Source: Bugula neritina
Lineage: Eukaryota > Animalia > Bryozoa
DNA: 15,248 nt
Assembly (NCBI GenBank): GCA_964035545.1
Contig: OZ037774.1
Location: 1-15,248, forward strand
Direction: 5' to 3'
In this document: one piece after another, positions 1 to 15,243 of the stretch
Layout of the letters: every line of letters starts with the position of its first letter
Numbering within the stretch: the first letter of the stretch is position 1
Made by a program: the position numbers and the translations under genes
The notes under the pieces: generated by a model
The model's input: only the letters and a program-made list of their open reading frames with translations
Told to the model about the DNA's origin: nothing
Database searches by the model: none

Positions 1-66
1 ACTACAGTAGCCTATAAAATAAGGTTTAACCCTGAAAAGGTTAAGAAGGTAAACTACCCAGTAGTA
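1..66 (+). tRNA. trnF: tRNA-Phe (GAA)
   Basis: Cloverleaf: acceptor ACTACAG/CAGTAGT (one A-A mismatch), D-arm present, anticodon stem TAACC/GGTTA with loop CT-GAA-AA, T-stem GGTA/TACC. Confidence 0.92.
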
Positions 67-2068: not shown

Positions 2069-2126
2069 AACTTGAAACAAAATTAGATTGCAAATCTAAT
2101 AAAGTACACATATAATACTCAAGTTT
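2069..2126 (+). tRNA. trnC: tRNA-Cys (GCA), D-arm replaced by a loop
   Basis: Acceptor AACTTGA/TCAAGTT, 7-nt unpaired AACAAAA instead of D-arm, anticodon stem TTAGA/TCTAA with loop TT-GCA-AA, T-stem GTA/TAC. Confidence 0.85.
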
Positions 2127-2131
2127 TAAAA

Positions 2132-2190
2132 TGAACTTATAAACGTCTAAGCTTCTAACTTAGAAAAGCGATTAAATTATTGCGAGTTCT
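2132..2190 (+). tRNA. trnS1: tRNA-Ser1 (TCT, reads AGN), D-armless
   Basis: Acceptor GAACTT/GAGTTC (6 bp plus terminal T-T), anticodon stem CTAAG/CTTAG with loop CT-TCT-AA, T-stem GCGAT/ATTGC. Confidence 0.88.
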
Positions 2191-3297
2191 ATGAAAAACC
2201 AAATAATAAAACACAACCCAGTAGGAAAAATAACTAACTCTTTAATTCAACTAGCTTGTCCTAAAAATATTTCTGCATTATGATCTTTCGGGTCTTTATT
2301 AGGTTTGTGCCTAATCACACAAATTTTAACAGGAATTTTTTTGGCCATGTTTTATATTCCAAATATCTATCAGGCTTTTGATTCTGCTATTTATATTTCT
2401 CGAGACGTAAATTTTGGCTGACTAATTCGCTCAATCCACGCTAACAGAGCATCTATATTTTTTATTTGTATTTATATACACACAGGACGGGGTATTTACT
2501 ACTCCTCACACCAAATAAAAGAAACCTGATTAGTAGGAGTCACACTCCTCTTAATTACGATTCTTACCGCTTTCTTAGGTTATGTATTACCATGGGGTCA
2601 AATATCATTTTGAGCAGCTACAGTAATTACGAACCTACTATCAGCTATCCCATATTTAGGGAGAACTATTGTAAACTGAATTTGAGGAGGATTTTCTGTT
2701 AGAAACGCTACTTTAACCCGATTTTATGCCCTTCATTTTTTATTTCCTTTCTTAATCAGAGCACTGTCTTTACTGCATATTATTTTTTTACATCAATCAG
2801 GGTCAAGAAATCCATTAGGATTAAACAGAAACAATGAAACTATAAAATTTCATATTTACTTTTCAGCTAAAGATTTAATCGGAGTTACTCTACTATGAAT
2901 TTTACTAGGAAGTGTAGTCCTACTAAAACCAAACTTACTAATTGACCCAGAAAATTTTATTCCGGCTAACCCTTTAGTAACACCTACCCACATCCAACCA
3001 GAATGATACTTTCTACCTATGTATGCTATTTTACGGTCTATCCCTAATAAATTAGGAGGTGTATTAGCTCTGATCATGTCCATTGCCATCTTATACTTTT
3101 TACCTATAATAAACAAACCACTCACCAAATCATCAAGAATAAATCCTAAAAACAAAATAATATTTTGGTTGTTAGTAGCCAACTTCATCGTTTTAATATG
3201 AATTGGTAGAAAACCTGTAGAATCCCCATTTGAAGAAATTGGGCAATTTATAACAGTAACCTACTTTTCTCTTTATTTAATTATAAGAAAAAATTAA
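2191..3297 (+). CDS. cob: Cytochrome b (368 aa)
   Basis: ATG..TAA; [66 protein letters not shown]. Confidence 0.98.
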
Positions 3298-3307
3298 ATT
3301 AATAAAA

Positions 3308-3628
3308 ATGCTAATACAAACTTTAGTTTCAAAAAATTTCGTTTCAATAAACATAGTATTTTTTTTAATAATAGTAATAACTTTAATCAGAATATTTTTT
3401 ATACGTAAACAATTATTATTACTGTTAATCACTTTAGAACTAATAAACCTTATAGTATTTATGATACTATTAATAAAAATAGTTTCGCAACTTCAACCAA
3501 TTTCAGTTGCATTTTATATATTAATTATGAGAGCATGTGAAGCCAGGATAGCGTTAAGATTAATAATTAGATTAACCCGAATTAAAGGGTCAGATATACT
3601 GAGATTAATTAGAAAATTTAAATTTTAA
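3308..3628 (+). CDS. nad4L: NADH dehydrogenase subunit 4L (106 aa from first ATG; true start could be a downstream ATA)
   Basis: Hydrophobic ORF with LLITLEL and ACEASMALSLMISLTRIKGSD motifs; directly upstream of nad4 with a 7-nt overlap. Confidence 0.9.
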   Translation: MLIQTLVSKNFVSINIVFFLIIVITLIRIFFIRKQLLLLLITLELINLIVFMILLIKIVSQLQPISVAFYILIMRACEARIALRLIIRLTRIKGSDILRLIRKFKF

Positions 3629-4972
3629 CAGTTTTTATTTTACTAAGTTTATCTTTTATAACACAAATCATAAGAAATAATAAAATAACACCTATTTTTT
3701 GAATATTTACACTATCTTTAATAACTACAACAACAAAACTGTGAAAAACATCTAGTAATTACTCTTGAACCTCGAGAATATTTAATTGTTCAAACTTTTC
3801 TATTGCCATGACCATTATTTCTATTTGAATCACAATAATAACCGTACTGGTAAGAACAAAATATGACTATATAAGCAAAAACTTCAACAATTTTATTTAT
3901 TTACTAATTTCTTTATTAATTATTACCATTACCTTTTTTATTACTGACAATTTACTAATAATATATATCACTTTTGAAGCATCTTTAATCCCTACACTAA
4001 TTCTAATTATCAAATGAGGATACCAACCAGAACGGTTAAAATCAAGATTTTACTTTATAATATACACAATTTGTGCTAGACTCCCTCTACTAATCATAAT
4101 TACAAAAATCAACAAAAATTTATTTTCTATAACAATAATGGCTAACTCACCCCTACACTTAATACAAAGAATATCAATACAAACTTTACAAACCTCCGCT
4201 TTAATAATAGCATTTTTAGTAAAAACCCCAATATGAACTGTCCATTTATGATTACCTAAAGCCCACGTAGAAGCACCAGTCAGGGGTTCCATAATCTTAG
4301 CAGGCATTTTGCTCAAACTAGGAGGATGGGGTTTAATTCAAATTACAAAAATAAGATTTAAAATTGTCAGAAACATAAAAAACTTATTTTATAGAGTAAA
4401 CCTTTGAGGAACTATAATAGTAGGAATTATTTGCCTCAGATCCGTAGATTTAAAAATATTAATTGCCTATTCCTCAGTAATCCATATAAATATAATAATT
4501 TTAGGAATTTTAAGAAATTCTAACTTAGGTATATTAGGCTCAATAATTATAATACTAGCACACGGGATTAGATCACCAGGAATATTTGCTATAGCAAACA
4601 TTTCGTATGAAATAACAAACACCCGAAACTTAATAATACAGAAGGGAGTAATAATAACACAGCCTAAAATACTATTTTTTTGATTCTTGTTAGCTGCTGC
4701 TAATATAGCCGCTCCACCTTCATTAAACTTGGTCAGAGAAATTTTAATTTACACAAGAATAATAAAAATAACGTTTGCATTTTTTACAATTGCAATTATA
4801 ACCACTTTAATTAGAGGAGCATACAACCTATACTTATTCTCTTCTCAAAAAGGAAGACCATCTAAATTAACACTGCCTAACAAAAAAATCACCAGAAATC
4901 AAATAAACTTTTTGTCTGCCTTATCATTACCAGTATTTATTATAACAATTTTTTTATATCAACTCAACATTT
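3622..4972 (+). CDS. nad4: NADH dehydrogenase subunit 4 (450 aa; ATT start, incomplete T stop)
   Basis: ATT follows an in-frame TAA and overlaps nad4L by 7 nt (ATTTTAA); [46 protein letters not shown]; a single in-frame T at 4972 abuts trnH (stop completed by polyadenylation, inferred). Confidence 0.93.
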
Positions 4973-5038
4973 GGAAAAATAGTTTAACAAAAACAATTAA
5001 TTGTGAATTAATAAATGAAAAATAACTTTCTTTTTCCA
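4973..5038 (+). tRNA. trnH: tRNA-His (GTG)
   Basis: Acceptor GGAAAAA/TTTTTCC, D-stem GTTT/AAAC, anticodon stem ATTAA/TTAAT with loop TT-GTG-AA, T-stem GAAA/TTTC. Confidence 0.95.
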
Positions 5039-5041
5039 AAA

Positions 5042-6736
5042 ATGAAAAAATGAAACAGCCTAACTTACCCATTAATAACTGCTATTTTACTAATAGCAAT
5101 GTTTTTAACTACACAAATATATCATACTTATATAATTGACACCCAAAACTCGGTAATCAAAGAATGAGAATTACTATCAATTAAAAGGGTAATAATTAAC
5201 ATTACCATTTTATTAGACAAAACTAGAATAATTTTTAGCAGCACTGTTTTACTCATTTCTTTCAGAGTTATAATGTTCACTACTTCATACATAGCAACAG
5301 ACAACAACATTAAATACTTTACCCTAACAGTAGTAACTTTTATCACATCTATAAACGCTTTAATTTTTTTTCCTAATTTAATTACAATTTTATTAGGATG
5401 AGACGGATTGGGTCTATCATCATACCTTCTAGTATTATACTACATAAATGAAAAAGCTATGAATGCAGCCATACTTACAGCTTTAACCAACCGAATTGGA
5501 GATGCATTACTTATCGTAGCCGTAGCGTGAACCATAATAAGAGGAAATTGAAATATATTTCTCTTAACTTTACAATCTCCTACATTTATTATAATAAGGA
5601 TTATATTAGCAGCCATAACTAAAAGTGCACAATTACCTTTCTCAGCTTGACTACCCGCAGCAATAGCAGCCCCCACCCCGGTTTCCGCTCTAGTGCATTC
5701 CTCTACCTTAGTTACAGCAGGAATTTACTTATTAATCCGATTTTTCCCCTCTTTTAATATATTAAAACACTTTTCAATATTCATAATAATCACCGGAATT
5801 ATAACCTGTTTAATAGCAAGAATAAGAGCATGTATAGAAAACGATTTAAAAAAAATAATTGCTTTATCCACACTCAGACAACTAGGAGTAATAATAATGT
5901 CTTTAGGAACAAACCAACCCGATTTAGCATTTTTTCACCTTATTACTCATGCTCTTTTTAAAGCATTACTATTTATTTGTGCAGGTAACATTATTCACAG
6001 AAACTTTAATAACCAAGATATGCGAATACTAGGAAACATGAATCAAACCATGCCCTTAACAACAACTACACTAAATATTGCCAACATATCATTATGCGGA
6101 CTACCTTTTATAGCAGGTTTTTATTCTAAAGACTTAATTATCGAAACAATTATACATACCAATGTACCAATCCTAACCATAATATTAATACTATTAAGAG
6201 TCTCACTAACCTCGGCATACTCAATAAAACTGGCCTTATTAACTTTGTGAAGTCCCGCCAAAGGCCCAACAATACAAAACTTAAGAGACCAAAGAAAAAT
6301 ATCACTAATTTCATACTTAACTCTAACAATTGGGGCCATTACCAGAGGAGCTAGGATAAATTGATTTTTTTCACCTCATCTAATAGACTTAACTTTACCA
6401 ATTTATATAAAATTACTAACTATTACAATTATTACTTTTATAGGAATTATAATATGAATAGTAATAAAACATAATAAAATCCCCCAAAACCATTTTTTAA
6501 CCACTATATGATTTTTAACGTTTATTACAACTTTCCATATTAACAAAAAAAGCACAACATTAATAAAAATCATACAGTACAACGAAAACACCTGAATAGA
6601 AAAAATGAGAGGAATAGGAATAAAAAAACTAATAAAAAAAAACACACAACTAAACCAATCAAGTACTAACATATCTTGAGTTATAACTATAACTAGGATT
6701 ATACTAATCACAATATTTACACTTATAAACTTATAA
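5042..6736 (+). CDS. nad5: NADH dehydrogenase subunit 5 (564 aa)
   Basis: ATG..TAA; [70 protein letters not shown]. Confidence 0.97.
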
Positions 6737-6737
6737 A

Positions 6738-7673
6738 ATGCTAACAATCAACACAATAATTAAATCTATCACTATATTTCTTTGTCTAGCCCTCAGAGTA
6801 GGGTTTTATACTCTAATAGAACGAAAAGTATTGTCTTATGCCCAACTACGTAAAGGACCTAACAAAGCTGGATTCCTAGGTATCCCTCAACCTTTAGCTG
6901 ACGCCATAAAACTGTTTACCAAAGAAACAACAAAAATTCAGAAATCTTTATTTGTATTATATAATATTAGACCGGTACTAGCAACTTCAATCATGTTTAT
7001 TACCTGAATATTATACAATACACCAGCTAATCACAACACTAGTGTAAAACTGAGAATTATACTATTTATTGTAATCTCCAGTTTAAATGTATACAGTATC
7101 ATACTATCTGGATGAGCTTCTAACTCTAAATATGCACTACTAGGAGCAATCCGTGCTGTGGCCCAAACTATTTCTTATGAAATCAGAATAGCACTATTAA
7201 TTATAAGTATTGTATTAATCTCTCTTAATTTCAATATAGAAAAAACATCCTTCAGACAAATACCCAGTTTATGAATAATATTTATTCTACCTTTAATTTT
7301 TTCAGCATGAATAATTACCATACTAGCAGAAACTAACCGATCACCATTTGACTTAGCAGAAGGAGAATCAGAACTGGTATCAGGTTTTAACATTGAATAC
7401 GGGAGAGGAGAGTTTGCTCTACTATTTATTGCAGAATACGGAAGAATTTTATTCATTACAATCCTAACGAGAACCTTAATATTAAAAGGCAAATTTGAAA
7501 GAATTAATATTACACAAATACTAAAAATTATAATCTTAGCTTTTACTTTTTTATGAGTACGTGCAACATTCCCTCGTATACGATATGACACATTAATATC
7601 TTTGACCTGAAAGACTTTCTTAACTTTAACAATTTGCAGAGTTACTGTCCTAGTAACTCATAACAACATCTAA
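6738..7673 (+). CDS. nad1: NADH dehydrogenase subunit 1 (311 aa)
   Basis: ATG..TAA; [78 protein letters not shown]. Confidence 0.97.
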
Positions 7674-8480
7674 ATGAAATTAAAAACAGACACAAAAAAA
7701 TGATTAGTTAATCCTTACCACTTAGTAGAATATAGACCTTGACCTTTAACTGGATCCATAGGAGCCCTTATACTAACCAGAGGAATCGCAGCATGATTCC
7801 ACAAATTTAACATAAATTTATTTTATTTAGGTATTATTTTAATTATCATCACTATAATACAGTGATGACGAGATGTGGCACGAGAAAGAACAATAATAGG
7901 ATTTCACACAAAAAAAACAGCTAAAGGACTACGAATCGGAATAATTTTATTTATTATTTCAGAAATTTGTTTTTTTTTCGCTTTTTTTTGGGCTTTTTTT
8001 CATAGAAGATTGGCTCCTACTATCGAACTAGGAAGGAACTGACCTCCAACCGGTGTCAACGCCTTATCACCATGGAGAGTGCCATTACTAAACACCGTAG
8101 TATTACTAGCATCCGGAATTACAGTAACCTGATCACATCATTCATTACTAACAAGAAATTACAAAGAAAGAACACAATCATTAACCATAACAATCCTACT
8201 AGGATTATATTTTACATACCTTCAAGGGTGTGAATACATTGAAACAAGATTCTCACTAAGAGACAGGATTTACGGCACTACTTTTTTTGTGGCCACCGGA
8301 TTCCATGGACTACACGTAATAATCGGGACAATCTTTCTAATTACCTGCTGTATACGACACATAAAATTACACTTCACTAAAACACACCATTTAGGCTTTG
8401 AAGCCGCAGCTTGATATTGACATTTCGTAGATGTAGTTTGATTATTTTTATTTATTTCTATCTACTGATGAGGAAGTTAA
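7674..8480 (+). CDS. cox3: Cytochrome c oxidase subunit III (268 aa)
   Basis: ATG immediately after nad1 TAA; [49 protein letters not shown]-stop. Confidence 0.96.
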
Positions 8481-8489
8481 AAGATAAAA

Positions 8490-8556
8490 AGCACTTTAAG
8501 TTAATTTAAACTTTCAACCTTCAAAGTTGAGAATAAGATTGTATTCTTAAGTACTA
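8490..8556 (+). tRNA. trnW: tRNA-Trp (TCA)
   Basis: Acceptor AGCACTT/AAGTACT (one C-A mismatch), D-stem AGTT/AACT, anticodon stem TCAAC/GTTGA with loop CT-TCA-AA, T-stem AAGA/TCTT. Confidence 0.92.
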
Positions 8557-8616
8557 AACAAACCCCATAATTTAAAATCCTAATAATATAAAAATTTATA
8601 GAATAAACAAAAAATT

Positions 8617-8679
8617 TTATAGCAGATAAAAACTTATCAATTTTTCATTGCAAATGAAATCTTTTTAAAGTATACTATA
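8617..8679 (-). tRNA. trnA: tRNA-Ala (TGC), only gene on the minus strand
   Basis: Reverse complement folds canonically: TATAGTA-TA-CTTT-AA-AAAG-A-TTTCA-TT(TGC)AA-TGAAA-AATT-GATAA-GTTT-TTATC-TGCTATA-A. Confidence 0.9.
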
Positions 8680-8812
8680 TTTATTTTTATTTACTTTAAA
8701 TTTGAAAAGATACTCTTAAAATTATAAAAAACATCAAATTAAAACAAGAAAATTTTTATCAAAGATTAACACAAGCACACTCATATAATCTATTCCATAA
8801 ACAAACTAAAAA

Positions 8813-8881
8813 TGATAGGTAGCTTAATAAAAGCATTAGACTTTTAATCTAATGATGAGATAAATAAAATCTCCCAATCAA
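8813..8881 (+). tRNA. trnK: tRNA-Lys (TTT)
   Basis: Acceptor TGATAGG/CCAATCA (one A-A mismatch), D-stem GCTT/AAGC, anticodon stem TTAGA/TCTAA with loop CT-TTT-AA, T-stem GAGAT/ATCTC. Confidence 0.93.
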
Positions 8882-9035
8882 AACGTTAAAGAAAATATTA
8901 AGTATAATAAAAAATATGACATTTTTAAAAATAAAAAGAGAGAATTACAAAATTAAAGTAAATAAATAAATAATGATATAAAGTAACCTAAACACAAAAA
9001 AAATTTTAAAAAAAGTACTTTTTTATAAAAATTAT
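8882..9035. other. Longest non-coding spacer (154 bp, very A-rich), candidate control-region element
   Basis: No gene recognisable between trnK and trnE; contains the palindrome AAAAAAGTACTTTTTT at 9009-9024. Function is inferred only. Confidence 0.45.
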
Positions 9036-9095
9036 GCTGTTAAACAAACATTTAGCTTTTCACGCTAAAGATTCTACCACTTCTAGATAACAGTA
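9036..9095 (+). tRNA. trnE: tRNA-Glu (TTC), D-armless
   Basis: Acceptor GCTGTTA/TAACAGT, unpaired AACAAACAT, anticodon stem TTAGC/GCTAA with loop TT-TTC-AC, T-stem TCTA/TAGA. Confidence 0.88.
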
Positions 9096-9130
9096 AACAT
9101 TCAAGTAATCTAAGAAACTCTTCACTTGAA

Positions 9131-9977
9131 AATAGAGTTTTGCTCTGGCTCAAAATTAATAAAACGAACTGTTCTCAATTAGTGTGCATGCAAGTGTAAG
9201 CCAACCAACAAACAACTATATAACTAAAAGTAAAATTGTTAATAACAGAAAAAATAAAGGAAATAAAATAATATTAACATTCCTAAATACTTTGTAAATG
9301 CAGTGCTTAATTTTACAACAATGATGAAAATCAGTTGAAAATGAGAGAAAAAAAGGTGGAAAAAATTGTGCCAGCATCCGCGGTTACACAATTACCTAAG
9401 TTATTAATTAGGAAAGATGGTAATATAATAATTAAAGAAGGAAAAAAAATAAAAAAAAAGTTTAATATAATTTACTGCTTTCCAACCCTTCAAATAATTT
9501 AAACCATGAAAATTAACTTTAGAACTAGGATTAGAGACCCTGCTACTAATAATATTAAACTAAAAATTCCAGGGTATTACGGGCTACAGCTTAAAACCTA
9601 AAGAGCTTGGCGGTTTTCTAACCACAACCGGGGGAGCTTGTAATTTAAATGATAATCCGCATTAATCTTCACCTTTCTTTGAACTTTCAGTTTGTATACC
9701 TCCGTCTAGTTAACCTCAAAGAGAAATAAAGTTAACTTTTTGATTGTGAAATCCCCAAGTCAGGTCAAGGTGCAACTTATAGAAAGGATATTATGAGCTA
9801 CATTACAATAGTTAATGAAATAAAAAATAAAAAAATTTTATAAAATAGTACTCGGCAGTAATAAAATTTTAACACCCTTTTATGAACTATACCTAGAAAA
9901 TGCACAAATCGCCCGTCAATCCCCCCTATAGGGGGATAAGTCGTAACACAGTAGGCGTACTTGAAAGTGTCCCTAAA
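9131..9977 (+). rRNA. rrnS: Mitochondrial small-subunit (12S) rRNA; ends approximate
   Basis: SSU motifs AGAGTTTTGCTCTGGCTCA (5' end), GCATGCAAGT, GTGCCAGCATCCGCGGTTA (530 loop), CTAGGATTAGAGACCC, GCACAAATCGCCCGTCA, AAGTCGTAACA. Confidence 0.93.
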
Positions 9978-10042
9978 GGGTTAAAAGCCAAAAACGGTAT
10001 TTAGCTGTTAACTAAAACTTTGTGAATTTTTCACTTAACCCA
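9978..10042 (+). tRNA. trnN: tRNA-Asn (GTT)
   Basis: Acceptor GGGTTAA/TTAACCC, D-stem GCC/GGT, anticodon stem TTTAG/CTAAA with loop CT-GTT-AA, T-stem GTGA/TCAC. Confidence 0.93.
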
Positions 10043-10046
10043 AACC

Positions 10047-10109
10047 AATAAAGAAAATATTAGATTTAGAATCTAAAAAATACATAACTATTATAAATGT
10101 ACTTTATTA
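10047..10109 (+). tRNA. trnL1: tRNA-Leu1 (TAG, CUN), D-armless
   Basis: Acceptor AATAAAG/CTTTATT, unpaired AAAATA, anticodon stem TTAGA/TCTAA with loop TT-TAG-AA, T-stem TACAT/ATGTA. Confidence 0.88.
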
Positions 10110-11368
10110 AAATTTTAACATAAAAACTTTTTGTTACCTTAAACATAAATTATATTTAGTATAGAAGATAGAACAAAAACAAAACACAACACACCGATAG
10201 GGAATAACAAAAAAAACTAAGCTAAGATAAAACCTTCTACCTTGTGTATCATAATCTACCTAACTAAAAAATCAATTTTATAAACCCGAAAGTAGAGTGA
10301 GCTATTTTTATTTAGTTAAGAACACAAAAAAATAATGTAACAAAATTATTTTTAAAAATAAAAATAGAGATGAAATGTCATTCGCACCTACAGATAGCTG
10401 GTTACTTTTTAAACACATACAAGTGTGACTCCTAAAAATGGAGAGTACTAATTTTGGGAAAAGCTAAAATTAGAAAAAGAATTATCTAACTTAATATAAT
10501 AACAAATCATACTAGGACTAAAAATACCCAAGATAAAAAACCTCTTAATTTGGTAAATAAAATACATACATAATTCTAGTTTAAATAATCTTACTCCACA
10601 ATAAAAAGTTATTAGAAAAAACAAAAAATTCTTAACAAAAATGGTTGAATAAGTAAAACAATTTTTTAACATTCCAAATAATATCAAAATGCCTAAAGGA
10701 ACTCGGCAAACCTAAGCAACGACTGTTTAACAAAAACATAGCTTCTTGAAACCATAAGAAGTTCTATCTGCCCGGTGACCAATGTTTAACGGCCGCGACT
10801 AAGTGCTAAGGTAGCATAATAATTTGTCTTTTTATTGGAGACTAGAATGAAAGAAGATAACGAGGCTTAACTGTCTCCAAGCATACTATTAAAATTGATT
10901 TAGAAGTGAAAAATCTCCTATAACAGTGAAGGACGAAAAGACCCTGTAGAGTTTGTAGTGAAATTAATAAAATAATAAATTCACTTTTATTGGGGCAATA
11001 AAAGATCAAATTTAAACTCTTTTAAAAAAATTTTTGATATATCAAAAGAAAACAGATCCTCAAAGAGAAAAAAGAAAAACTACCTCAGGGATAACAGCGT
11101 AATTCTTCCAGAGAGATCTAATTGAAGGAATGAGTTTGCGACCTCGATGTTGGACTAAGGTAACTTTTAAATGCAGAAGTTTATTAAAGTAAGCCTGTTC
11201 GGCTTTTAATACCTTACATGATCTGAGTTCAGGTCGGCGTAAGCTAGTCCGGTTTCTATCCTCACTAAGAAAATTTTTTTTAATTACGAAAGGAACAAAA
11301 AAAAAGAATAATTCTTTTACAAAAAATAAAATAACAACAAAAATAAACCACCATATCAAAACACACCA
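10110..11368 (+). rRNA. rrnL: Mitochondrial large-subunit (16S) rRNA; ends set by flanking tRNAs
   Basis: LSU motifs GGAACTCGGCAAA, GACTGTTTAACAAAAACAT, GCTAAGGTAGCATAAT, GACGAAAAGACCCT, CAGGGATAACAGCGTAAT, GACCTCGATGTTGGA, ACATGATCTGAGTTCAG. Confidence 0.93.
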
Positions 11369-11433
11369 ACCCTATTAATATAAAACATTATATTTACCTT
11401 CCAAGTAAAAAATCTAAAACTTTAGATAGGGTA
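11369..11433 (+). tRNA. trnG: tRNA-Gly (TCC)
   Basis: Acceptor ACCCTAT/ATAGGGT, AT-rich D-arm, anticodon stem TTTAC/GTAAA with loop CT-TCC-AA, T-stem CTAA/TTAG. Confidence 0.92.
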
Positions 11434-11447
11434 AATCATAACTAAAG

Positions 11448-11505
11448 TATAATGAAACCCACTCTTTTACAAAGAGCACACAGGTTATTATATAACCCAT
11501 TATAA
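11448..11505 (+). tRNA. trnV: tRNA-Val (TAC), D-armless
   Basis: Acceptor TATAATG/CATTATA, unpaired AAACCC, anticodon stem (A)CTCT/AGAG(C) with loop TT-TAC-AA, T-stem GGTTA/TAACC. Confidence 0.87.
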
Positions 11506-11523
11506 ATCAATCATCAAAGTCTC

Positions 11524-11593
11524 CAGAAAATAGTTTAAACAAAACTCTATCTTTGGAAGATAGTAATCGAGATACCTCTAACTCGTTTTCTGA
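11524..11593 (+). tRNA. trnP: tRNA-Pro (TGG)
   Basis: Acceptor CAGAAAA/TTTTCTG, D-stem GTTT/AAAC, anticodon stem CTATC/GATAG with loop TT-TGG-AA, T-stem CGAG/CTCG. Confidence 0.95.
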
Positions 11594-11626
11594 AACACTT
11601 ACAATCTTAATTAAACTTGACCTCAA

Positions 11627-11687
11627 AATAAGGAAGACAAAAGATTTAAAATCTTTTAAGTACATAATACACAAATGTACCTTATTA
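11627..11687 (+). tRNA. trnL2: tRNA-Leu2 (TAA, UUR), D-armless
   Basis: Acceptor AATAAGG/CCTTATT, unpaired AAGACA, anticodon stem AAAGA/TCTTT with loop TT-TAA-AA, T-stem TACAT/ATGTA. Confidence 0.88.
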
Positions 11688-11720
11688 CTTTTTACAAATT
11701 TTGTTAACAAAATTGAGTTT

Positions 11721-11784
11721 AATTGAGTAAGCTAAATCTAAGCTGTAAGGCTCATAACCTTAAAATGGAACTTCCCCTCAATTA
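11721..11784 (+). tRNA. trnM: tRNA-Met (CAT)
   Basis: Acceptor AATTGAG/CTCAATT, D-stem AGCT/AGCT, anticodon stem TAAGG/CCTTA with loop CT-CAT-AA, short T-arm. Confidence 0.94.
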
Positions 11785-11850
11785 ACACTAAATCACATAT
11801 GTGAATTAAGCTGATACCTTAAAAGAAAAGAATTACTACTTTTAGTGTTA
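11784..11850 (+). tRNA. trnI: tRNA-Ile (GAT)
   Basis: Acceptor AACACTA/TAGTGTT, D-stem TCAC/GTGA, anticodon stem TTAAG/CTTAA with loop CT-GAT-AC, T-stem AAAG/CTTT. Confidence 0.92.
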
Positions 11851-11888
11851 AGATCTTTTATCTCTCAATTAAATGAAGTTCATCAAAA

Positions 11889-11956
11889 AAAAAGGTAATT
11901 AAAAAATAATTTTAGTTTGTCAAACTAAGTTTGCGTTTTCAATTACGCCCTTTTTA
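11889..11956 (+). tRNA. trnD: tRNA-Asp (GTC)
   Basis: Acceptor AAAAAGG/CCTTTTT, AT-rich D-arm, anticodon stem TTAGT/ACTAA with loop TT-GTC-AA, T-stem GCGT/ACGC. Confidence 0.93.
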
Positions 11957-11960
11957 ACAG

Positions 11961-12020
11961 GGCTTTTCAATACATTTAGATTTGAACTCTAAAAATGGGG
12001 ATGCACATCCCCAAAAGCCT
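11961..12020 (+). tRNA. trnS2: tRNA-Ser2 (TGA, UCN), D-armless
   Basis: Acceptor GGCTTTT/AAAAGCC, unpaired CAATACAT, anticodon stem TTAGA/TCTAA with loop TT-TGA-AC, T-stem GGGGA/TCCCC. Confidence 0.9.
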
Positions 12021-12491
12021 ATGAATTTAAGAAATTTAGTTTATATAATATCTTTACTTATTTTAATCACCCCCTTAATAGAAAGCATTATTACATTAGG
12101 AGGCATAATAATTCTCGCCCCGTTACTTAGGACAATTATTATTGCAAAAATGATTAACTCGTGATTTGCAATAATCTTATTTTTAATTTATATTAGCGGC
12201 TTATTAGTACTTTTTGGCTACATAATAGCTATAAGCCCCAACCCTAAAAGGTTTAACAAAAAGCTAATAATTTATATTATCTTAGGATTTAGAATATGTT
12301 TTTTTCAAAACAAAAAAATCTTTTTTTTTCCCAAAAGCAACCTTAATTATGAAAACGAAGTCTTTTTCCTTTTTCAAAAGTTTAATTTACCCGTATATTG
12401 ATTAATAACTATCATCTTACTTATTACTTTAGTAATAGTGGTGTATATTTGTTTTAAATCACAAAAACCATTACGTCCTTTTTTAACATAA
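12021..12491 (+). CDS. nad6: NADH dehydrogenase subunit 6 (156 aa)
   Basis: ATG abuts trnS2; SWFAMILFLIYISGLLVLFGYMMAMSPN and C-terminal KPLRPF, TAA stop. Confidence 0.93.
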
Positions 12492-12556
12492 AAATTTTCT
12501 ATTTATTTATATTATTATATATTTTACAACTCCTATATATTACATATAAACTCCCC

Positions 12557-12579
12557 CTTCTTCTTCTCTTCTTCTTCTT
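12557..12579 (+). repeat. Interrupted (CTT)n microsatellite in the nad6-cox1 spacer
   Basis: CTTCTTCTT-CT-CTTCTTCTTCTT read directly, preceded by CTCCCC. Confidence 0.8.
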
Positions 12580-12602
12580 AAATTTCGTAATTCTTTCTTT
12601 TT

Positions 12603-14138
<1,536 letters not shown>

Positions 14139-14148
14139 AATTTCTATT

Positions 14149-14274
14149 ATGCCTCACCTAAGCCCTTTAAACTGAAACATAATCTACTTCATTATTTGAT
14201 CTTTAGTGTTATCAAACATAATTTCTTTAGAAACATTCAACCCAATATTAACCAACTTGCCTAACAAAATTTAA
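14149..14274 (+). CDS. atp8: ATP synthase F0 subunit 8 (41 aa)
   Basis: MPHLSPLNWNMIYFIIWSLVLSNMISLETFNPMLTNLPNKI-stop; MP(Q/H)L-type N-terminus followed by one hydrophobic stretch. Confidence 0.88.
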
Positions 14275-14280
14275 AAATAA

Positions 14281-14346
14281 GTAAATAAAGCTTTGAAGAA
14301 GCAACAGATTTGTAATCTGAAGATCATGTAAACATATGTATTTACT
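14281..14346 (+). tRNA. trnT: tRNA-Thr (TGT)
   Basis: Acceptor GTAAATA/TATTTAC, D-stem GCTT/AAGC, anticodon stem CAGA/TCTG with loop TT-TGT-AA, T-stem CAT/ATG. Confidence 0.92.
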
Positions 14347-14359
14347 TTTAAATACTTTA

Positions 14360-14426
14360 AGATGGTTAATACATAAATAAGTATATTTGATTTCGAATCA
14401 AAAAGAGTTTAACTTAACATCATCTT
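14360..14426 (+). tRNA. trnR: tRNA-Arg (TCG)
   Basis: Acceptor AGATGGT/ATCATCT, D-stem ATAC/GTAT, anticodon stem TTTGA/TCAAA with loop TT-TCG-AA, T-stem GTT/AAC. Confidence 0.92.
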
Positions 14427-14428
14427 AA

Positions 14429-14486
14429 GCGTGGGAAATAACTATGGCTGTAAACCGTAAAATGGGTAATTAAAACCCCCAACGTA
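14429..14486 (+). tRNA. trnY: tRNA-Tyr (GTA), D-armless
   Basis: Acceptor GCGTGGG/CCAACGT (one G-A mismatch), unpaired AAATAAC, anticodon stem TATGG/CCGTA with loop CT-GTA-AA, T-stem GGGT/ACCC. Confidence 0.88.
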
Positions 14487-14495
14487 ATGTAATTC

Positions 14496-14552
14496 TCTAA
14501 AACATATAATAAAACTTTGAATTTTATTAAGGGATTAAACTCCCTTTTAGAT
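14496..14552 (+). tRNA. trnQ: tRNA-Gln (TTG), D-armless
   Basis: Acceptor TCTAAAA/TTTTAGA, unpaired CATATAA, anticodon stem TAAAA/TTTTA with loop CT-TTG-AA, T-stem GGGA/TCCC. Confidence 0.88.
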
Positions 14553-14553
14553 C

Positions 14554-15243
14554 ATGGCAATAGACATTTTTTCCACATTTGACGACCATAACAAGGTACT
14601 TATTGACGCTTATATACTTATTTGAATCACACTTATTACACTTTGTGTGCTGTTAATAAAAAAAATATGATTTACTAGCTCTAAACTTTCTTTTTTCAAC
14701 ACAATAAAATCTGTTGTCTCAGAATTAGTTGCACGAAGAAATATAAAAACAATACTGGGCTCTTCTTCCTTAATAACAGCTATTATAACCACAGTTTTAA
14801 CACTTAACCTATTTGGATTAACACCTTATACTTTTAGAGCCACTAGACATTTAGTAATCAATCTTAGACTAGCCTTAATTTTATGATTGCATATTTTGAT
14901 AAAAAGAATAAGATTTAACTTATCAGAATTTTTAGCTCACCTTCAGCCTTTGGGCGCACCTGCAATAATTAGTCCTTTTTTATGCCTTATTGAGTTAGTG
15001 AGGCTCATAGTACGCCCTTTAACATTAGCTGTTCGATTAACCGCAAACTTAAGAACCGGGCACATTCTAATAAGACTCTTAGGAACAGGAATAGTTAGAT
15101 CACCTTTACCAGTAAGAATTTTATTAATAGCACTTGGATCTGCTTATTGCATATTCGAAATAGGAGTTTGTTTTGTACAAGCCTACATTTTTTCTTTGTT
15201 ACCCACACTATACGCTGACGAACACCCAGATAAAATTATTTAA
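14554..15243 (+). CDS. atp6: ATP synthase F0 subunit 6 (229 aa)
   Basis: MAMDIFSTFD start, NLFGLTPYTFSATSH, LAHLQPLGAP, RPLTLAVRLTANLSTGH, FEMGVCFVQAYIF, YADEH; TAA stop. Confidence 0.96.

Follow-up and report, generated by a model that had tools for sequence, protein, structure and literature searches.

Nine D-arm-lacking tRNAs in the mitochondrial genome of a Bugula neritina-type bryozoan, read alongside two nuclear genes for mitochondrial EF-Tu

The stretch of DNA analysed here (the window, 15,248 bp, AT content ∼71%) is a complete bryozoan mitochondrial genome in which nine of the 22 tRNA genes encode molecules without a D-arm. It is contig C321 of a 216-Mb assembly. Translated with code 5, its NAD3 protein is identical to that of Bugula neritina at 114 of 117 residues and, given this protein and the gene order, we regard the source as belonging to the B. 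neritina species complex. All 13 protein-coding genes lie on the forward strand (invertebrate mitochondrial code), and rrnL was located by Rfam. Genes run in the order F, nad3, nad2, cox2, C, S1, cob, nad4L, nad4, H, nad5, nad1, cox3, W, A (minus strand), K, E, rrnS, N, L1, rrnL, G, V, P, L2, M, I, D, S2, nad6, cox1, atp8, T, R, Y, Q and atp6, which is the order of the published B. neritina mitogenome (PMC2678162). The nine D-armless tRNAs (C, S1, E, L1, V, L2, S2, Y and Q) are all on the forward strand and were placed as follows (lengths in nucleotides [nt]; ΔG, folding free energy; MFE, minimum free energy):

2069..2126, forward strand: trnC (GCA), 58 nt; perfect 7-bp acceptor stem, A-rich connector of 6-7 nt, weak 3-bp T stem
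2132..2190, forward strand: trnS1 (UCU, AGN), ∼59 nt; manual placement; acceptor stem of 6 bp with a terminal mismatch in addition, connector of 7-8 nt, T stem of 5 bp; immediately followed by the cob ATG (2191)
9035..9096, forward strand: trnE (UUC), 62 nt; ARAGORN D-loop call; three-arm MFE fold, 8-nt connector
10047..10109, forward strand: trnL1 (UAG, CUN), 63 nt; placed by hand; immediately 3' of trnN; perfect 7-bp acceptor stem, 6-nt connector, 5-bp T stem
11448..11505, forward strand: trnV (UAC), 58 nt; ARAGORN D-loop call; three-arm MFE fold, z = -4.3
11627..11688, forward strand: trnL2 (UAA, UUR), 62 nt; ARAGORN D-loop call
11960..12021, forward strand: trnS2 (UGA, UCN), 62 nt; ARAGORN D-loop call; ΔG -19.2, z = -4.4; abuts nad6
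14429..14486, forward strand: trnY (GUA), 58 nt; ARAGORN D-loop call
14496..14553, forward strand: trnQ (UUG), 58 nt; ARAGORN D-loop call; 5-nt connector; abuts the atp6 ATG at 14554

Run in metazoan-mitochondrial mode at default settings, ARAGORN returned 23 candidates, six of them labelled as D-loop tRNAs (E, V, L2, S2, Y and Q). trnC was called only once the threshold was lowered, and manual placement was needed for S1 and L1, each located from the only anticodon loop of its kind with a perfect 5-bp stem (TAG in the case of L1) together with an acceptor stem at the right distance. The 80-nt cloverleaf that ARAGORN offered for S1 (2113-2192) was rejected as implausible, having two acceptor mismatches and overlapping both trnC and cob; the 59-nt D-armless form is an exact fit to the gap. 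Fit to neighboring genes is similarly tight at the Q/atp6 and S2/nad6 junctions. Every one of the nine has a 7-nt anticodon loop (Y-U-NNN-R-N) with a unique, needed anticodon, and together with 13 cloverleaves they make up the standard set of 22 with no duplicates. A further ARAGORN call, c[12279,12336], has a two-base anticodon, lies inside nad6 and looks spurious. Settings unsuited to mitochondrial tRNAs recovered little (bacterial-mode ARAGORN found zero tRNAs in the window, and Rfam at the gathering threshold found trnK and rrnL fragments only), and ARAGORN at 80% thresholds gave several hundred calls and was uninformative.

Unconstrained RNAfold predictions gave exactly three helices for each of the nine tRNAs: an acceptor stem of 6-8 bp, an anticodon stem of 5-8 bp and a T stem of 3-7 bp. 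In the MFE folds of all nine, the place of the D-arm is taken by an unpaired connector of 5-8 nt, which is below the room needed for a 3-bp stem plus loop, so that no D stem is physically possible. A reading made earlier from the sequence alone had named these same nine tRNAs and proposed that they be folded as a check; ARAGORN, hand placement, RNAfold and the shuffle control given below all uphold it, and its short unpaired connector stands, with a measured length slightly under the ∼6-9 nt that it had estimated. Acceptor stems are a perfect 7 bp in C and L1 and carry one mismatch in S1 and Y, that of Y being conserved in five species. The anticodon stem can be extended to 6-8 bp in eight of the nine (up to 8 bp in Q), as is usual among D-armless tRNAs. 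T stems are 4-7 bp long in eight of the nine and 3 bp in trnC. None of the nine is T-armless, as the earlier reading had held, and the set is biased toward D-arm loss as it had described, with nine D-armless tRNAs against zero T-armless ones. ARAGORN makes D-loop calls readily in AT-rich DNA: across 40 dinucleotide shuffles of the window, they arose by chance at a rate of 1.6 per shuffle over both strands. By our own arithmetic this corresponds to ∼0.07 expected calls in the ∼1.2 kb of free forward strand (the window minus protein genes, rRNAs and cloverleaf tRNAs), compared to six observed, each with a different and otherwise missing anticodon.

Conservation was evaluated in pieces of five one-strand mitogenomes (L014, L015, L016, L018 and L020) reached via NAD3 homologues. 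A sixth, L013, was left out, as its gene order differs and its genes lie on both strands. trnY is D-armless in all four of the relatives that contain it. An alignment of the five sequences has 92% of its cells paired and includes seven pairs in which both partners have changed, a result reached by none of 500 shuffles; in slid registers pairing collapses to 33-51%. The D-arm is also missing from S1 and S2 in L014, L018 or L020 (S2 in L014 and L020) and from the two Leu tRNAs of L016, with single compensatory changes seen for L1 and L2. Cloverleaves were called for trnC in L014, L015 and L020, for trnE in L014, L016 and L020, and for V and Q in L016 (trnV as a 72-nt cloverleaf by ARAGORN). A D stem is visible in the inspected relative folds of C, E and Q; the MFE fold of V (L016) does not resolve the arms. 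Aligned with the cloverleaf trnC of L014, trnC of the window is identical at 46 of 58 positions and keeps the acceptor, anticodon-arm and 3' sequence, while the D-arm segment is absent. The trnE orthologues of L014 and L016 are cloverleaves with acceptor stems similar to that of the window, and both C and E have acceptor-stem and anticodon-arm sequence in common with the genes of the relatives. The cloverleaf state of C, E, V and Q in relatives thus suggests four D-arm losses specific to the Bugula lineage.

The two Leu tRNAs appear to have a different history. L1 and L2 are identical at 48 of 62 positions, a match that no other tRNA pair in the genome approaches, and the differences in their stems are compensatory; the L016 orthologue resembles L1 of the window and not L2. 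This likeness, together with the match of L1 to L016, suggests that L2 arose by remoulding of a copy of L1 after L1 had lost its D-arm, in which case the D-armless state of L2 would be no independent loss but the result of L1 duplication and anticodon remoulding. Remoulding of this kind would also explain the D-armless L(UUR) reported as common to Flustra and Bugula. A plausible order of events is therefore stepwise and partly lineage-specific: the D-arm of S1 would have been lost ancestrally to bilaterians, those of S2, Y and L(CUN) at an earlier stage of cheilostome evolution, L(UUR) would have become D-armless on replacement by a remoulded L(CUN) copy, and C, E, V and Q would have followed in the Bugula lineage.

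We consider it very probable, from sequence and predicted structure, that the nine genes encode genuine, functional tRNAs that lack a D-arm and are delivered by the ordinary mitochondrial elongation machinery. Several points weigh against this. The trnC fold is weak (ΔG -6.7, with a T arm of just 3 bp), as is that of trnL1 (ΔG -5.7, z = -1.2). D-armless C, E, V and Q are seen in this genome alone, and the covariation observed is that of Y, with single compensatory changes in L1 and L2. The five relatives are probable cheilostomes, an assignment drawn from their position amid named cheilostomes in a quick tree of NAD3 and from shared gene blocks. Finally, one of the two nuclear-encoded mitochondrial EF-Tu proteins of this animal (EF-Tu1, below) sits on a long branch that could reflect some co-adaptation. 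The weak thermodynamics of C and L1 would also be compatible with some of the nine, most likely these two, being decaying relics whose function is supplied by cytosolic tRNA import. However, the 7-bp acceptor stems and the anticodon stems of C and L1 are free of mismatches, each of the two is the sole gene for its own codon family, the acceptor stem of L1 is kept relative to L016 through compensatory change, and C keeps the sequence described above relative to L014. Import of tRNAs is not known to be established for bilaterian mitochondria with a complete set of 22. Decay with import is thus highly unlikely, and functional, D-armless genes are preferred for C and L1 as for the other seven.

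A mitogenome of B. neritina was described in 2009 (Jang & Hwang; AY690838; PMC2678162). In that account 13 tRNAs are cloverleaves, Q, L(UUR), S(AGN) and S(UCN) are D-armless, and C and Y are aberrant; L(CUN), A, E, Y and V are assigned to the minus strand, the Leu gene reading GAG and the Tyr gene AUA as anticodon. Compared via the published paper and the NAD3 protein, AY690838 and the window have the same gene order, protein and rRNA genes on one strand with trnA on the other, 13 cloverleaf and nine atypical tRNAs, and CTT repeats between nad6 and cox1. They differ in length (15,433 bp versus 15,248 bp), in three of 117 NAD3 residues, and in E, V, Y and L(CUN), which are minus-strand genes with odd anticodons or shapes in the published annotation and forward-strand, D-armless genes with standard anticodons in the window. 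Were the 2009 annotation right, these four would have other truncated shapes and there would be fewer simple D-armless genes. In its favor are Table 1 of that paper (PMC2678162) and the treatment of the GAG anticodon as a synapomorphy with Flustra (PMC3285623). However, the published minus-strand trnV, between R and Q, falls on the site of the forward-strand trnY (GTA and TAC being reverse complements), and the forward-strand folds use G-U pairs that become A-C mismatches on the opposite strand. Forward-strand genes with standard anticodons are available for all four, in stretches annotated there as non-coding (NC4) or as the beginning of rrnL: the published 246-bp "NC4" holds trnE, and the 5' end of the published rrnL holds trnL1. 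Y, E, V and L1 of the relatives are on the coding strand with standard anticodons, and covariation backs the forward-strand structure of Y. It is therefore very doubtful that the 2009 strands are correct: the minus-strand placement of E, V, Y and L(CUN) looks mistaken, with only trnA truly inverted.

This reading would correct the tRNA annotation of a reference bryozoan mitogenome by moving to the opposite strand four genes whose published orientation is probably wrong. Such a correction affects two anticodons used as characters in the Flustra foliacea paper, namely the "unique" GAG (Leu), treated there as a phylogenetic synapomorphy of Flustra and Bugula, and AUA (Tyr), read as a Bugula "autapomorphy" (PMC3285623). 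That D-armless structures might not be new for bryozoans had been anticipated in the sequence-only reading, and the literature agrees (PMC2678162, PMC3285623, PMC3326299). In F. foliacea, the D-arm is lost in both Leu tRNAs and one Ser tRNA (PMC3285623), and a MiTFi survey found Ser1 and Ser2 D-less in all bryozoans surveyed, Cys occasionally so, and others occasionally losing D or T (PMC3326299). Both accounts give fewer than the nine of 22 in the window, and E, V and Q are not named in them as D-armless. The window is thus an extreme case of a known bryozoan tRNA reduction in an already published species; what is new relative to the 2009 annotation is a uniform forward-strand reading of the nine, together with a direction for the losses and the remoulding of L1 into L2.

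The other 13 of the 22 tRNAs (F, H, W, A, K, N, G, P, M, I, D, T and R) were all called as cloverleaves by ARAGORN, with D stems of 3-4 bp:

1..66, forward strand: trnF
4972-5039, forward strand: trnH
8490-8556, forward strand: trnW
8617..8679, minus strand: trnA (UGC), the sole minus-strand gene
8813-8881, forward strand: trnK
9978-10042, forward strand: trnN
11369-11433, forward strand: trnG
11524-11593, forward strand: trnP
11720-11786, forward strand: trnM, with a T stem of only 2-3 bp
11782-11852, forward strand: trnI
11889-11956, forward strand: trnD
14280-14347, forward strand: trnT
14359-14427, forward strand: trnR

trnA is on the coding strand in the five probable cheilostome relatives and on the minus strand in the window, where its minus-strand reading is identical to the forward-strand trnA of L014 at 51 of 63 positions. 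A forward-strand trnA or a second trnC at 8617-8679 was rejected, as the forward reading fits neither trnA nor trnC of the relatives. Around trnA, ∼400 bp of AT-rich sequence is without an assigned gene (8557-8616, 8680-8812 and 8882-9034), and these spacers are a possible site of the control region and of a promoter for the minus strand. The nad6-cox1 spacer (12489-12602) contains a CTT-repeat pyrimidine tract at ∼12557-12580, comparable to the 'NC10' CTT repeats of B. neritina. Since the nad4 frame continues into trnH (4972-5039), this gene probably terminates at 4971 on an incomplete stop codon (T), a feature also of the published genome. For nad5, the most likely start codon is then the ATG at 5042, just past trnH, in preference to 5015.

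The sequence-only reading had further proposed that a D-loss-biased tRNA set may need co-adapted nuclear partners and that a duplicated mitochondrial EF-Tu should be sought. When the EF-Tu model was run against the genome assembly of this animal, two mitochondrial EF-Tu genes were indeed recovered. They are the only EF-Tu-type nuclear genes found (exactly two, both intron-bearing and on chromosome-scale contigs), the remaining matches to the model being EF-1alpha:

G000 C1:22889144-22892643: EF-Tu1 gene, eight coding pieces (loci L003, L005, L008, L011 and L012)
G000 C5:1581528-1583729: EF-Tu2 gene, three exons, 465-amino-acid (aa) product (loci L001, L006 and L010)

The EF-Tu1 protein (C1) has the conventional motifs GHVDHGK and DCPGHADY; its start exon was not found among the coding pieces located. 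Its tail extends ∼29 aa past the G-x-G-V-I/V motif and is Lys/Ala-rich and arthropod EF-Tu1-like; a long C-terminal extension of 41-57 aa was not found in Bugula. It was also observed that EF-Tu1 carries altered conserved motifs (for example GHVDCPGH versus AHTDCPGH elsewhere) and is at most 59% identical to any other protein compared. The EF-Tu2 protein (C5) has a basic presequence of ∼45 aa, the motifs GHIDHGK and DCPGHIDY, and a C-terminal extension of ∼35-40 aa with a GFN motif. Its first exon matches the "elongation factor Tu-like" protein of another bryozoan, Watersipora subatra, at 85% (∼70% over the whole protein) and, beyond a tight group of close homologues, reaches at most 66% with other animals. 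Two further sequences probably come from ciliates present in the assembly: an intronless 430-aa EF-1alpha (C60:15087-16376, minus strand), and an EF-Tu-like stretch broken by 12 TAA codons and one TAG codon (C154:6546-7007, minus strand), which these ciliates would read as sense.

EF-Tu trees were built from 90 and from 42 proteins under LG+G4 and LG+C20 with posterior mean site frequencies (PMSF), with nematode sequences not in the set. In these trees the C5 protein belongs, along with proteins of Littorina, Batillaria and Capitella, to a lophotrochozoan clade, and this clade joins arthropod EF-Tu2 (Drosophila, Musca "EF-Tu 2" and the second Tribolium gene) with a Shimodaira-Hasegawa-like approximate likelihood ratio (SH-aLRT) support of 100 under both models. 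Within it, the bryozoan EF-Tu2 proteins form their own long-stemmed subclade. The C1 protein groups with arthropod EF-Tu1, adjacent to vertebrate TUFM. Its terminal branch is the longest of all (1.06-1.4 substitutions per site versus a median of 0.18-0.28), and it is the only bryozoan EF-Tu1 in the set. At the aminoacyl-pocket position held by Thr in T. thermophilus (residue 239), nearly all EF-Tu2 proteins in the set, those of bryozoans included, have Ile or Val (one arthropod keeps Thr), and EF-Tu1 proteins have Thr or Ser. The C5 gene is thus an orthologue of arthropod EF-Tu2, its orthology to nematode EF-Tu2 being drawn via the arthropod proteins. EF-Tu2-type proteins with DCPGH-I-DY, a pocket Ile or Val and a GFN tail (P0122, P0150, P0179 and P0189) were observed in bryozoans, gastropods and an annelid. 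As EF-Tu2 is common to molluscs, annelids and arthropods, the EF-Tu duplication is far older than the extra D-arm losses, and would date to the protostome ancestor or before. No open-access paper was found that says so, or that mentions EF-Tu2 outside nematodes and arthropods.

The presence of two mitochondrial EF-Tu genes, the long EF-Tu1 branch, and the long-stemmed bryozoan EF-Tu2 subclade with its GFN tail are what would be expected if D-arm loss beyond Ser had required specialized, co-adapted nuclear factors, such as an EF-Tu dedicated to D-armless tRNAs of many identities, with labor split according to tRNA shape as the mirror image of nematodes. However, EF-Tu2 also occurs in molluscs, annelids and arthropods with one to a few D-armless tRNAs, and the change of pocket Thr to Ile or Val is the same as in other EF-Tu2 proteins. 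Moreover, bacterial EF-Tu, bovine mitochondrial EF-Tu and Trichinella EF-Tu1 all bind D-armless tRNAs, with contact made through the acceptor/T helix (PMC1636415), and nematode EF-Tu2 is Ser-specific (PMC1636415, PMC12221289). A requirement for such factors is therefore unlikely. Of the specialized machinery envisaged from the sequence alone, the two genes are there, but a lineage-specific adaptation is not supported: EF-Tu2 is protostome-wide, the pocket change is common, and ordinary EF-Tu binds D-armless tRNAs. No evidence was found that the Bugula mitogenome needs elongation-factor machinery of its own, and that inference is at best weakly supported.

Delivery by ordinary machinery, the reading preferred here, would follow from the acceptor/T helix gripped by EF-Tu being intact in all nine tRNAs. 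EF-Tu1 would act as the general carrier, and EF-Tu2 would probably serve Ser and perhaps other small-residue tRNAs. Sato et al. are said to have found in 2017 that EF-Tu2 of Drosophila prefers small aminoacyl groups; if bryozoan EF-Tu2 acts likewise, bulky D-armless tRNAs (Y, L, E and Q) would ride on EF-Tu1. D arms could then decay as EF-Tu never needed them, while we propose that T arms are kept because the EF-Tu1 tail is short (∼29 aa) and there is no long, nematode-type compensating extension. According to a published rule, T-arm loss tracks EF-Tu1 tail length, and a natural system with nine D-armless tRNAs, zero T-armless ones and a short-tailed EF-Tu1 fits that rule. It is improbable, though conceivable, that in the Bugula lineage one EF-Tu paralogue changed its clientele to accommodate nine D-armless tRNAs, including the bulky Tyr, Leu, Glu and Gln, giving a division of labor by shape that arose independently of nematodes; the fast-evolving EF-Tu1, or the bryozoan EF-Tu2 with its long GFN-motif tail, may be candidates for such a change.

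In nematode mitochondria, EF-Tu1 goes with T-armless tRNAs and EF-Tu2 with D-armless Ser tRNAs. Nematodes resemble Bugula in combining two nuclear mitochondrial EF-Tu paralogues with wholesale tRNA truncation, and the second EF-Tu of Bugula has a C-terminal extension and groups with arthropod EF-Tu2, a paralogue named after the nematode protein. The two systems differ in the arm that is lost and in the protein tail that goes with it: in nematodes the T arm is lost and EF-Tu1 has an extension of 41-57 aa, whereas in Bugula the D arm is lost and the EF-Tu1 tail is ∼29 aa and Lys-rich. In Drosophila, the 2017 study of Sato et al. reportedly describes two EF-Tu proteins, mEFTu1 and mEFTu2, alongside mostly cloverleaf mitochondrial tRNAs. 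The clade of Drosophila and Musca 'EF-Tu 2' includes the Bugula C5 protein, but the lophotrochozoan proteins differ in having DCPGH-I-DY instead of DCPGH-A-DY and a longer, GFN-motif C-terminal tail.

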